A DNA stretch of 63,092 nucleotides, filler included, from Perkinsus chesapeaki ATCC PRA-425 (taxonomy: Eukaryota; Protista; Perkinsozoa), in NCBI GenBank assembly GCA_013115145.1. It is 8 parts of 8 records of this genome, joined end to end, with 100 filler letters (N's around TTAATTAATTAA, not from the genome) between each part and the next. Parts side by side here need not be neighbours in the genome. Positions count along the whole stretch, not along the records: positions 1 to 15,084 come from JAAPAO010000733.1; 7 more parts are not named here. One strand, written 5' to 3'. Under the pieces are notes generated by a model. The model saw only the letters and a program-made list of their open reading frames with translations. It searched no databases and had not been told where the DNA came from. Below are positions 119 to 7,112 of this stretch, in pieces. Position numbers and translations under genes: made by a program. The number at the start of each line of letters is the position of its first letter. The first letter of the stretch is position 1.

Positions 119-534
119 AAATGGTGTAGTCGTCATTGATGACTCATTAATAGGCACTTTTAGTGTTATATCAGAGTAAAGTGACATGAATAACCCGAGA
201 TGCAAGTATTCTTACACGAGACCCAAGCAACGAACCACACTGGCCGCCAGTTACTGGCGCAGAAGTGCTCCCCGTTGTGTGAGATGTCTAACATATGGGC
301 CTTAAATACCCCCATCACCTGGATGTCCTAAACCGAGCTTGAGAATAGATGTATTCATATAGCTTGCCAGGCAAGCCTTGCCTTCAGGATCGCACGACTA
401 CCGGAACTGAACCGGCACGCGATAGGGTAGGGATTGAGACGAAACTTCGGGGTCACGTAAACGCTCCACGTGGGCATGCGTGTTGGATACGTTCGAGCTT
501 TCGTGGGCCAGTAAGTCTCATAGTGAAGTTGTCA

Positions 535-1623
535 ATGCAGCCTCCTTCAACTATCTTATTCGTCCTCGTTGGTTGGTATCATTCGGTGAGCAGTCAGATA
601 TCATTGCCATTCAAGGACAGCATTGCCACCGGACTGTCATTCGATGGGCAACCGCTCAAGATGATGCTTGATACTTCGCTGAGTGGAACCTATGTTGTGT
701 ATAAGGAGTGGTATGAGAAAACCTTCGGGAAGGGTGCTTGTAAGCGTTCTCAAGGTGGTTGCTACTCCTGCCCTGGTGAATGCAATCCTTATAGTAGGGA
801 ACGAAACGTTCTCACGTTCCTGGATGGCGGATCGATAACCAGTGTCATACATGAAGGCATGGTTAAGATTGGAAAATACAAGCTGAAAATGAAGTTTCGT
901 TTAATTATAGGCTACTCTGCTGGCGCAGAACTGCCCCATTGGAAGCCTCCCAATTATCTTGGTCTTGGTTTCGCTGACTCTAGCAATCTGGAGACGCTTC
1001 CTCGTAGCCTCTACGATAAAGGTATTATCAAGAGATATACGATATCTATATGCTCCCCTAGTGATCCGGTGTTCTTTCAAGGCACCGTGATACTCGGTGA
1101 ATGGAAGGGGTTGTGTCGTATCAAGTCTGATGTCACTACAATTCCAATGGCCCAGTCTCACGATTTAGGGCACATTCTCTCGGATCTATCCTCTTATGGT
1201 CTGGTGAGCTCTACAGGAAAAACTTACACACAACATCGAGTTGGTGCCGCTGAATATGATACGGGCACCGTTTTTCTTTGTCTCCCGAGGGTCATCTTTG
1301 AAGACTTCTGTAACAAGATCGTGTCTTTCGCCGGGCCCGATGTGTTTCTCAAGACCGACGATGAGGGGTTCTGGTATATAACAGCCAAGCGGCGCAAAAA
1401 CTTTCCGACTCTGACATTCTCTGTTGGAGATCCGCGTCATCCTGTCATTATACGCATCCCACCCGAGCGGTATGCCATTAGATGTAATAGTAAATGGTGT
1501 AGACTTGCACTCCTGTTTTGGGATGGGTCGCAAGTCATTCTCGGTCGCCCCTTCTTCACATCTTACTTCTCTTCTTACGATCTAAAGTCACGAACTATTA
1601 GTATTGCTGAATATCACGGGTAG
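535..1623 (+). CDS. Secreted pepsin-like (A1) aspartyl protease, intronless; last codons supplied by the inserted transposon
   Basis: ATG at 535 starts a signal-peptide-like MQPPSTILFVLVGWYHSVSSQ. Catalytic-type motifs are MMLDTSLSG and EYDTGT, with YLGLG, VILGE and VILGRPFFTSYFSSYD, matching the pepsin fold. The ORF-track extension to 349 is probably not coding. Confidence 0.85.
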   Translation: MQPPSTILFVLVGWYHSVSSQISLPFKDSIATGLSFDGQPLKMMLDTSLSGTYVVYKEWYEKTFGKGACKRSQGGCYSCPGECNPYSRERNVLTFLDGGSITSVIHEGMVKIGKYKLKMKFRLIIGYSAGAELPHWKPPNYLGLGFADSSNLETLPRSLYDKGIIKRYTISICSPSDPVFFQGTVILGEWKGLCRIKSDVTTIPMAQSHDLGHILSDLSSYGLVSSTGKTYTQHRVGAAEYDTGTVFLCLPRVIFEDFCNKIVSFAGPDVFLKTDDEGFWYITAKRRKNFPTLTFSVGDPRHPVIIRIPPERYAIRCNSKWCRLALLFWDGSQVILGRPFFTSYFSSYDLKSRTISIAEYHG

Positions 1624-3164
1624 CATCTGCGGAAGATAGGGTGTCCAAAATTCTGTCGCTTAATTAAGCATACCACTCGATTCCCCAGGCTCTAGGGAGC
1701 TCAAAAACAGATTTCATAGAGCTGGCTTACATCTGTATGTTTTTTTACTGCCACATTTAGAATTGGCGCGCAAAATGTAAAAAGCGCGCGCCCAGTAGTG
1801 ACCTTCTACCCCTTTCAAATCGTGATCCAGAGCTCTCTCCGTTGTACAGCAACCAGCAATCACTTAAATAATGCGTAGCGATAGATAATACACAACTTAG
1901 TTCACAAAAAAACCTCCCATTTTCGCTCATTCAGTCGCAGCGCGTTACGTGCTGCGTAGGCACCCTGCTAGCGCTCTGCACAGGGTGCTGCAAAACCCTC
2001 CGAGCCTCCTCTGTGCTCCGCTATCACACTCATATATTCCTAACATCGAACTCTCACCAATGTCCGACCTTACGATTCCATCAGAAGTAGCTGCCACTCT
2101 TGAACTGTTATCTCTTTCGCCTCTACACCTGATGCTCGGTATTGTTAACAAGCTGTACAGTAATGCAAGAGCATCTGCCGAGTGCACCAACAAGGGCTCT
2201 CTCTATAGCAGGCACTGCAAAGCCCTTGTGGAAAACAACATTAGGCGTTCGGCCTACTTTGAAGGTGCACTAGAGGGTAACAGCTGCTCGCGGCTGCTTG
2301 ACGCTATCGCAGATGACAAGATACCTTTCTCTCCCAAGGTTGTTCCCTTGGTGAATGCATTGAAGGCTTTCCACGAGTTCAAAGCGAAGTGTCTTGGAAT
2401 CCACAGAGTAGATGGATGGGAGCAGTCTATCGAGAGTTTTGGATCTGCATGGGATGCAACTGGTCTAGTCCGTACTCTGAAAGTCCATATTGTACTTCAC
2501 CATGTAAAGGAGTACTTATTACACTACGAGTCAGTGCCAGAGGCTGGCCAGGGCCTTTCTTCGGAGCAGTCTGGAGAAGCTCTTCATGCAAGACTCCAGC
2601 GCATCTGGAACCTACGGTTCAAGGTCAACCCGGAAAACAAAGCTTTTCCAGATAGGCTTGTGGACTGCATGGTGTCGTATAACTGGAACTTGAGGTGGGA
2701 TGAGGCTGAGAGGGCAAGAGCACAAGAGACTGGTAACGTTGAAACTGACGGCTCTGACTCTGACAGCAGCATGAATGGTTCGTTGGTAGCCAACGAACGT
2801 GATTCAGAGTCTGAAGCTTGCGACATGTCAGATGAAGGAGATACTAGCTCGTCAGGTTCAAATTACTAACTATTTTTTTATTTTCTTCGACAATTTTAAC
2901 AACTAAAGCCGTCTCGGCTGTAATGTTCTTGTTTTGTGTTGTTATGTCATCTATTTGTCGGTGAAATTGATGTGCGGCTTATACCGGGCGCGCGCTTTTT
3001 ACATTTTGCGCGCCAATTCCAAATGTGGCAGTAAAAAAACATACAGATGTAAGCCAGCTCTATGAAATCTGTTTTTGAGCTCCCTAGAGCCTGGGGAATC
3101 GAGTGGTAAGCTTAATTAAGCGACAGAATTTTGGACACCCTATCTTCCGCAGATGCTACCCGTG
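1615..3164 (+). mobile_element. DNA transposon, Chapaev/Transib/RAG1-type, probable internal-deletion derivative
   Basis: Seen: TIRs at 1615-1793 and 2986-3164 (179 bp, 2 mismatches by eye), termini CACGGG...CCCGTG, flanked by ATAT at 1611-1614 and 3165-3168. Confidence 0.92.
2060..2869 (+). CDS. C-terminal portion of a DDE transposase (Transib/Chapaev/RAG1-like); ORF open from 1949
   Basis: Motifs LSPLHLMLG, LEGNSCSRLL, KVHIVLHHV (H-x4-H, like RAG1 HKTLAH) and GLSSEQSGEALH (catalytic-Glu region), followed by an acidic tail. The family assignment comes from remembered motifs. Confidence 0.7.
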   Translation: MSDLTIPSEVAATLELLSLSPLHLMLGIVNKLYSNARASAECTNKGSLYSRHCKALVENNIRRSAYFEGALEGNSCSRLLDAIADDKIPFSPKVVPLVNALKAFHEFKAKCLGIHRVDGWEQSIESFGSAWDATGLVRTLKVHIVLHHVKEYLLHYESVPEAGQGLSSEQSGEALHARLQRIWNLRFKVNPENKAFPDRLVDCMVSYNWNLRWDEAERARAQETGNVETDGSDSDSSMNGSLVANERDSESEACDMSDEGDTSSSGSNY

Positions 3165-4099
3165 ATATGCATCCCGCTAAGAACCCAGAGGATACTGAAG
3201 TCTGCTGGATGAATCTGGTTCATCGTAATGGTACTTTGTGTACGAGTATCTCATTCGGGTTCGACTCACGCTTCCTCTACCTGGTGAGTGTATGACAGCA
3301 TTTTCGTGGACCCTGCGAGAAGCACACTGTACTTTTTTCTCAAAGGTGTATATTACGAGTTGAGTTGTTCATCGATGTAGTGCATGAGGGCTACAACGTC
3401 GGCAGATTAATTCGAAGAGATATTCAAAAACTGCCGCATATAGGAAGGCGACATTTATCCCGTCCCATCTGACACGTGAAAATAATCGCCAAATCGATAC
3501 TTTTAAAGTGTTACTTTCAGCATTGAACATTGGCCGCGCTCAGAGCACTCCTATAAAACACCCATGCAATGAAGATCCCGAATAAGATTCTGGAGTCCCG
3601 TGCGCGTTCGAGTGCCTCGAAATGCCTTTATTGTCCGTATAGCTCGGTGCCACCGAGTTGGTGGTATCCTTCGACACGCTCAGTTTACCGAGCGCGTTTT
3701 GATCTTGGGCCTTGGGGTCCTTTTGACAATTATCATATGGGCTGCGGCAAGCCAGGCCAAGTTAATTTGGTGGACTGTACATAGCCTCCTGTTGTAGACC
3801 GTGGGACTTTATGTCATTACCGCATAAATTAACAGCGGATATGACGCTATTCCCAGTGATAAGTACAGAGTAATTTAGGCAACCTAGTTTCTGTCACTTA
3901 TGTTCCCTAAGGATTTACGAAGAGGCTCCTCGGAGGAGACGCTTCCGACGAGTTAAGATACTAATAATAATAACGATTCATATACTGTATAGTATAATTG
4001 CCCGTACTGAGTAATACTTAGTAAGTACCGTACTTAAAGCACGAGGGGTTATAAGTGGGTAATCCGTGTTCTTACCTAAGGCTTTCCCTTTCAGCTCCT

Positions 4100-6988: not shown

Positions 6989-7112
6989 ATTACGGCCTCC
7001 TCGCTCTGGCCCCAGTCTGGGGACTCCCCAGTCAAATTCTACGCTCAAACTGGGGACCGCAGTTTGAGCGTAGAATTTGCCCGCAAAACAAGGGCCGCGA
7101 GGGGCGTGTAAT
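6989..7112. repeat. Nested palindromic structure (outer imperfect IR, 7-bp hairpin, perfect 20-bp hairpin)
   Basis: CTGGGGA-c-TCCCCAG at 7017-7031; CAAATTCTACGCTCAAACTG (7033-7052), 7-nt loop, CAGTTTGAGCGTAGAATTTG (7060-7079); outer arms attacggcctcctcgctctggccc / gggccgcgaggggcgtgtaat. Confidence 0.85.

Follow-up and report, generated by a model that had tools for sequence, protein, structure and literature searches.

A very probable non-autonomous Chapaev-type DNA transposon at the end of an aspartyl protease gene in the alveolate Perkinsus chesapeaki

RAG1 is the recombinase of antibody genes, with an origin traced to Transib- and Chapaev-like transposases, and Chapaev is, to our knowledge, the only lineage sharing an N-terminal zinc domain with RAG1. 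The Chapaev superfamily of Repbase reportedly goes back to Kapitonov and Jurka in 2007 and is said to form part of the assemblage variously called CMC, the 'Transib superfamily', or CMCT. The element described here occupies positions 1615-3164 of a 63,092-nucleotide (nt) stretch of DNA, hereafter the window, from Perkinsus chesapeaki, an alveolate protist that parasitizes oysters and clams; the relevant part is contig JAAPAO010000733.1 (15,084 bp) of assembly GCA_013115145.1, to which an exact look-up of the product of its open reading frame also leads. The element is very probably a cut-and-paste DNA transposon of the Chapaev type in non-autonomous form, a placement made by the hallmarks of the superfamily and not by a tree with Repbase references.

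Published hallmarks of Chapaev include a target site duplication (TSD) of 3-4 bp, invariable CAC/GTG termini, and a transposase with C(2)C, LH, and H(4)H motifs (PMC4079192). Chapaev has been grouped with Transib and RAG1, its transposase has an N-terminal zinc domain named Chapa, and Hydra is among the genomes sampled in the published tree of the Transib superfamily that includes Chapaev (PMC4411706). Transib has no N-terminal zinc domain (PMC4411706; 10.64898/2026.01.24.700457), and the RAG1 NZD and Chapa domains are both reported to resemble ZAD domains (10.64898/2026.01.24.700457). Across the wider CMCT clade, C(2)C and H(3-4)H motifs are common and TSDs range from 2 to 5 bp (PMC12730594). 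The Perkinsus family resembles Chapaev in its CAC...GTG ends, 4-bp duplication, single transposase of ~650-750 amino acids (aa), DDE core in which C(2)C, LH, and H(4)H separate the second Asp from the Glu, and non-autonomous deletion derivatives, and it has a putative multi-cysteine zinc domain at the N-terminus. It differs in its host, an alveolate protist, whereas Chapaev has been described from animals in the cited literature, in its unusually long terminal inverted repeats (TIRs; 179 to ~830 nt), and in the long branch that separates it from Hydra-type proteins.

The window element is ~1.55 kb long and lies between inverted repeats, as established by a repeat scan and a reading of the ends. 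The scan returned arms at 1608-1797 and 2982-3171 with 98% identity, palindromic flank counted in; measured from the CAC terminus, each TIR is 179 nt long, and the two differ only at offsets 55 and 144 (98.9% identity). Other inverted pairs within 15 kb are 20-29 nt long and match at 70-96%; a repeat of 179 nt with 98.9% identity far exceeds what chance would give. The left TIR (1615-1793, plus strand) starts CACGGGTAG... and is 90% identical to the TIR of L008, a paralogous element of the same genome, and the right TIR (2986-3164, minus strand) terminates ...CTACCCGTG, giving the ends CAC...GTG. The TSD, ATAT, stands at 1611-1614 and again at 3165-3168, and the 5-bp flanks, AATAT and ATATG, differ. 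Between the TIRs, all on the plus strand, lie a 5′ untranslated or promoter part (1794-2059), with no coding similarity found upstream of 2060 inside the element, the only long open reading frame (ORF; 2060-2869), which encodes 269 aa from its ATG or 306 aa from an upstream GTG, and a 3′ untranslated part (2870-2985). This ORF, identified by an ORF scan and protein comparisons and annotated as a gene in the source assembly, contains the motifs LSPLH, HIVLHH (H-x4-H), and SSEQSGEALH. An earlier note on this DNA had described, in an alveolate, 179-bp TIRs with two mismatches, CAC...GTG ends, an ATAT duplication with mismatched 5-bp flanks, and an ORF with LSPLH, H-x4-H, and SEQSGEALH; the repeat scan, flank reading, ORF, and contig of origin agree with it on each of these features.

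The ORF encodes a truncated transposase. Residues 3-13 align with residues 7-17 of a 758-aa P. marinus protein and residues 10-219 with its residues 494-703; the first ~15 codons of the full protein are fused in frame to the last ~255. Among the ~480 codons missing from the window ORF are those for the predicted zinc domain at the N-terminus, the two catalytic Asp residues, and the CxxC; LH, H(4)H, and the SSEQSGE Glu region are retained. At the nucleotide level, element positions 3-482 match L008:1944-2414 at 80% identity and positions 483-1550 match L008:6877-7938 at 83%, a split that places the breakpoint at window position 2096/2097.

Other copies of the element were sought in Logan contigs of four public runs (X1-X4) from two studies of P. 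chesapeaki, mapped onto window positions 800-4000; such contigs demonstrate presence, not absence, and their summed depth is no copy number. One set of X2-X4 contigs agrees with the window as far as 2103, beyond which come codons for ...DDYHVNKLYC, where the predicted zinc domain begins (compare DDYHISKLYCVCRFC in L008), and a second set joins the window at 2097, preceded by codons for ...QPVIQWDKSP (compare AQPVIQWDKSPLELL in L008). The 7 nt common to both sets, CTCTTGA (2097-2103, plus strand), are the microhomology at the deletion junction. Since these contigs continue on both sides of the breakpoint, the longer partner that the earlier note had predicted, together with the loss of the N-terminal catalytic Asp residues now apparent from the P. 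marinus and L008 alignments, exists in the species. L008 itself was considered as the source of the longer contigs and rejected: of the 30-mers flanking the breakpoint, one has no match in L008 and the other has 3 mismatches, so the longer partner is a different copy.

An in-frame loss of ~1.44 kb (~480 codons) from inside a full-length element, with a copy of the 7-bp microhomology at either end, would have produced the window copy; such a pattern is expected from interrupted gap repair after excision. The start codon, the last third of the coding sequence, and the two TIRs would have been kept. Lacking both Asp residues and the CxxC, its product would be unable to cut DNA, and the copy would be movable only by the transposase of a longer one. 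Ds derived from Ac, KP, and other deleted P elements are alike in keeping both TIRs, in losing the middle of the transposase gene, and in having the junction in a short direct repeat (7 bp here). The window deletion differs in being in frame, with an uninterrupted 269-codon ORF that has the original start codon; its putative product may or may not share the repressor action of KP.

Contigs spanning the flank-to-TIR junctions (800-1640 and 3139-4000) were found in all four runs, so that each of the two independent samples has the insertion; an empty allele would be marked by a contig that links 1614 directly to 3169, and none was seen in the four runs. Several contigs match only from 1615 onward or only up to 3164, beyond which their flanks differ; the exact divergence at these positions shows that there are other copies and that CAC and GTG bound the mobile unit. 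In X2-X4, summed contig depth inside the element is 3-8 times the flank depth and variant contigs differ by about 2-5%, and in X1, the run that best matches the assembly, depth is raised at the TIRs only. An exact search of JGI metagenome contigs with a 32-nt TIR end returned no match. Separately, an X2-X4 contig joins the inner edges of the TIRs (1796 to 2985), skipping 1188 nt, at ~2 times the flank depth and with just 22 letters on one side; this joint, unproven, may represent either a miniature derivative made of the TIRs alone or an artefact of the assembly graph where the repeat is inverted.

The earlier note had also called the insertion recent. The duplication is perfect and the 269-codon ORF is uninterrupted, and a young copy is plausible. 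Recent insertion is not demonstrated: TIR identity cannot date the event, because two TIRs need not be identical at insertion. The insertion is shared by both samples, and an empty allele was not seen among the contigs. The paralogous subfamily represented by L008 in the same genome is only 80-83% identical and carries a nested insertion.

TSDs were read at five related elements that have both ends, and in each the 5-bp flanks mismatch. Besides ATAT at the window element, these are AGTT at L002 (ENA ERZ25072730, 4877-9856; 582-nt TIRs with 2 mismatches), GCGT at L006 (P. marinus GG679899.1, 4428-7537; 213-nt TIRs at 95%), AAGT at L007 (a 4.0-kb element with a 690-nt perfect inverted-repeat segment, TIRs ~830 nt in all, and a 751-aa ORF), and CGGA at L008 (JAAPAO010000026.1, 1942-7938), the left terminus of which is degenerate (AGCGGGT). 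L001, L002, L006, and L007 have CACGGGT at each end, and L008 and the degraded copies L004 and L005 have it at the right end. TIRs are ~180-210 nt long in Perkinsus and up to ~830 nt in the ENA elements. As reconstructed from these sequences, the full-length element of the family is ~3 kb long, with one ~750-aa ORF and TIRs starting CACGGGT. L006:4428-7537, with its uninterrupted 758-aa ORF (PMAR020401), is apparently an intact autonomous element and a candidate active Chapaev-type transposon in a culturable protist. The gene of L008 is broken after its first ~15 codons by ~2.6 kb with a minus-strand ORF that has a ZBED1 RNase-like (hAT-type) Pfam match, an insert that looks like a nested transposon. 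In L002, ~17 codons around the first catalytic Asp are missing from the transposase gene and a stop codon stands there; 754-aa members fall in the same 90% cluster as P0005, the cluster of this element, and next to the element lie genes for DPYD and dynein, each a long ORF without interruption. L005 (P. marinus GG670550.1; 3222-4878 and 5644-7020) is a 5′-truncated copy in which the right terminus, ...GCTACCCGTG at 7020, survives; the gene immediately upstream of it encodes an integrase domain of retroelement type (Integrase_H2C2).

When the window ORF and ten longer relatives were scanned against Pfam and NCBIfam, nothing rose above noise, and the sole matches are weak ones, to DUF1280 and zf-AD, in two animal-type relatives. 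A word-indexed protein search with the window ORF returned only hypothetical proteins of P. marinus, P. olseni, and P. chesapeaki and proteins of two ENA assemblies (ERZ20067936 and ERZ25072730); a second word search gave the 758-aa P. marinus protein PMAR020401, ENA proteins of 751-754 aa, and a Hydra vulgaris protein (P0065). Over the two word searches the Perkinsus proteins matched at E 1e-93 to 1e-206. An exhaustive profile search gave 1418 relatives at E<=1e-3, many of them 650-700 aa long. The longer relatives extend N-terminally, with the first Asp in KFQ[LF]DGGQQFLK, followed by the second Asp, CP[FY]C, LH, H-x4-H, and SSEQSGE, and the full D...D-C(2)C-LH-H(4)H-E set is present in the 758-aa P. 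marinus protein and the 751-754-aa ENA proteins. Nearly invariant among 88 aligned sequences are D196, K198, C215, C218, L271, H272, H389, H394, E415, and E419, numbered in P0015, a 501-aa P. marinus protein. Most long matches have the C(2)C/LH/H(4)H pattern; the window ORF keeps LH, H(4)H, and the Glu region only. DUF1280, which has no function assigned in Pfam, matches just before the second Asp in the animal-type relatives P0052 (E 6.4e-7) and P0024, and the domain may be a fragment of Chapaev-type transposases.

A shallow 14-sequence profile found nothing among PDB sequences. With the 88-sequence profile the top four matches were RAG1 (3JBW, E 0.0017; 6DBI; 6DBV) and amphioxus RAG1L (BbRAG1L, 6B40, E 0.012), and the alignments pass through the second Asp, CxxC, LH, and HxxxxH. 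An AlphaFold2 model of P0015 built from the 88-sequence alignment has a mean predicted local distance difference test (pLDDT) score of 87.9 and a predicted template modelling score of 0.85. In a Foldseek search of the PDB with this model, the first 49 chains are all RAG1, BbRAGL, or HzTransib (E 5.8e-13 to 5e-6, probability 1.00), and the next fold is the P element (E 7e-4). VIA-align scored RAG1 at Z 23.0 (415 residues, root-mean-square deviation 3.7), HzTransib at 22.6, BbRAGL at 21.1, the P element at 13.3, and Hermes at 9.5. As modelled, the transposase has the RAG1/Transib fold, shared with HzTransib (6PQN/6PQX) and with RAG1 and amphioxus RAGL (3JBW, 6DBO, 6B40) over ~390-430 residues at Z 21-23. 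The order of catalytic and zinc-ligand residues is also the same as in Transib, RAG1, and RAGL, and the CAC ends are shared, while identity is only 12-16%. Language-model features point to clusters with the RAG1_RNase_H, ZnC2, and ZnH2 Pfam families, a lead only.

The full-length proteins carry one His and ten Cys over ~185 N-terminal residues (H22, C30, C33, C79, C82, C125, C131, C134, C168, C171, and C183), conserved in 50 sequences. Modelled separately, residues 1-200 of PMAR020401 from P. marinus reach a pLDDT of 80, and their only structural neighbours are ZAD domains, all of them weak: the top Foldseek rows have E about 1, and the top five VIA matches across the PDB have Z 3.1-4.3 over ~64 residues. 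The N-terminal 357 aa of L002 gave noise only against PDB sequences. A full-length transposase of the family would combine a multi-cysteine zinc domain at its N-terminus with a DDE core of the RAG1/Transib fold, in which the two Asp residues, C(2)C, LH, H(4)H, and the Glu follow one another in that order. By analogy with RAG1 and Transib, such an enzyme would bind the TIRs, nick at the CAC ends, and free the element via hairpins on the flanking DNA, and the element would then insert with a 4-bp stagger; the 4-bp duplications themselves are observed.

Relationships were examined in a quick IQ-TREE analysis of 32 proteins, with unnamed representatives and one Hydra vulgaris protein as outside members. 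Perkinsus and ENA sequences form one clade on a long stem, with a Shimodaira-Hasegawa-like approximate likelihood ratio test (SH-aLRT) value of 100, in which a Perkinsus group (89) is sister to an ENA group (95); the P. chesapeaki protein encoded by L008 and the window ORF form a pair.

The published hallmarks of Chapaev can be compared with these data directly. CAC...GTG termini are found in the window and CACGGGT in its relatives, the degenerate left end of L008 aside; the TSD is 4 bp in all five elements (ATAT, AGTT, GCGT, AAGT, and CGGA); and the residues of C(2)C, LH, and H(4)H are nearly invariant in the 88 aligned relatives. The core also has the RAG1-type arrangement of pre-RNase H, RNase H, ZnC2, ZnH2, and C-terminal domain. 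Profile and fold searches uphold the assignment of the ORF to a RAG1/Transib/Chapaev-type transposase in the earlier note, its proposed structural comparison with RAG1 and HzTransib having matched both, and Chapaev among the three is favoured by the five 4-bp TSDs, the termini, and the motifs. EnSpm/CACTA (CACTA termini, 3-bp TSD) and Mirage (2-bp TSD) were considered and are excluded by the CACGGGT termini and the 4-bp TSD; the Pfam models Transposase_21/24 had no match at E up to 5. By duplication length, Transib proper and RAG-like (RAGL) transposons (5 bp), CACTA (3 bp), and Tc1/mariner (TA) are all excluded. The chance that the element is a Tc1/mariner-type transposon with a TA duplication and TCACGGG termini, an alternative which the earlier note had left to a tabulation of other TSDs, is negligible: the palindromic ATAT flank of the window taken alone permits a TA reading, but other copies in the species diverge exactly at 1615 and 3164, the duplications AGTT, GCGT, AAGT, and CGGA of the relatives have no TA at the junction, and the fold is like that of RAG1 and not of Tc1. 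That the element is instead Transib proper or a RAGL transposon is improbable. Its core fold matches HzTransib and RAG1 about equally (Z 22.6 and 23.0), and CAC termini are common to Transib and the heptamers of recombination signal sequences, yet the five elements have 4-bp duplications where Transib, RAGL, and RAG make 5-bp ones, the full-length proteins have an N-terminal Cys/His domain that Transib lacks (PMC4411706; 2026 preprint), and the terminus beyond CAC, in CACGGGT, is unlike the heptamer. RAGL also has a RAG2-like second gene, and none was found in the 3.1-kb L006 and 4.0-kb L007 elements, each of which holds a single long ORF.

A separate, undescribed RAG1-fold (CMCT) lineage, sister to Chapaev and merely sharing its 4-bp TSD and motifs, is unlikely, though less so than Transib or RAGL. 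It would account for the long stem of the Perkinsus and ENA clade, for an identity of only 20-29% to the 650-700-aa Hydra-type proteins, for the lack of a matching Pfam model, and for the very long TIRs. Against it, all of the published Chapaev hallmarks (PMC4079192) are present, one profile search links the family to hundreds of animal proteins of the same architecture, P0065 of Hydra vulgaris among them, Hydra was sampled in the published tree that includes Chapaev (PMC4411706), and P0024, P0059, and P0116 group with P0065 in the quick tree.

A Chapaev-type element with a full-length partner is the preferred reading, and several points weigh against it. Chapaev and a sister lineage of the same RAG1-fold group are not separated by a tree, and the Perkinsus and ENA stem has a length of 1.79 away from the Hydra-type proteins. 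Neither the RAG1 NZD nor a Chapa reference structure is among the structural matches of the N-terminal model, and the comparison for that domain rests on a weak ZAD match (Z 4.3). The flanks of L001 are ambiguous (ATCC or ATATCC). In X1 the internal part of the element is single-copy, with an unbroken contig (1773-2706) across the junction, and the close full-length partner is seen only in the sample of the second study and is not evident in X1. Lastly, the window sequence was found in none of the RNA runs.

For the Chapaev-type family, presence in a protist is a modest extension of the known range. A literature search, with Repbase outside its scope, found no report of Chapaev in Perkinsus or dinoflagellates. 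The DPYD linked to L002 is about 70% identical to the DPYDs of many animal phyla, so the organism that carries L002 is probably an animal. Perkinsus parasitises molluscs, which makes transfer between host and parasite possible. We tentatively suggest, while holding it somewhat less probable than its opposite, that with the Perkinsus elements, which would join a core of the RAG1 fold to a zinc domain like Chapa, Chapaev-type transposons are for the first time documented in a host other than an animal, and that either the family crossed between animal host and parasite or this branch of RAG1-like transposases predates animals. With a multi-copy family of Chapaev type in three Perkinsus species, the history of the RAG1-like enzyme family can be studied over a wider range of organisms. 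The family also provides a candidate for an active element in a protist that can be cultured, may be a case of transfer between host and parasite, and explains a set of Perkinsus 'hypothetical proteins'.

The element is inserted where an ORF for an A1 aspartyl protease has its 3′ end (349-1623, plus strand; Pfam PF00026, E 3.9e-10); within this ORF, the annotated gene (535-1623) carries PF00026. When the empty site is reconstructed by removing the element and one ATAT, the protease ORF ends ...ISIAEYASR-stop; with the element in place, it ends ...ISIAEYHG-stop, the final three codons (His-Gly-stop) being derived from the TIR. The insertion would have landed 9 nt ahead of the protease stop codon, and the His-Gly-stop ending may be mild enough to have been tolerated. 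The annotated C-terminus of one P. chesapeaki aspartyl protease gene is, on this comparison, supplied by a transposon TIR. An aspartyl protease gene also lies near L006 in P. marinus; that it represents the same locus as in the window was considered and rejected, the two having no similarity, and the proximity is a coincidence.

Two further repeats were recorded in the window. A tandem array at the contig end (1-124) has a period of 20-21 nt (41-nt double unit) and ~5.7 copies with 73-91% match, and a near-perfect palindrome at 7033-7079 has 23-nt arms with 96% complementarity and a 1-nt spacer.

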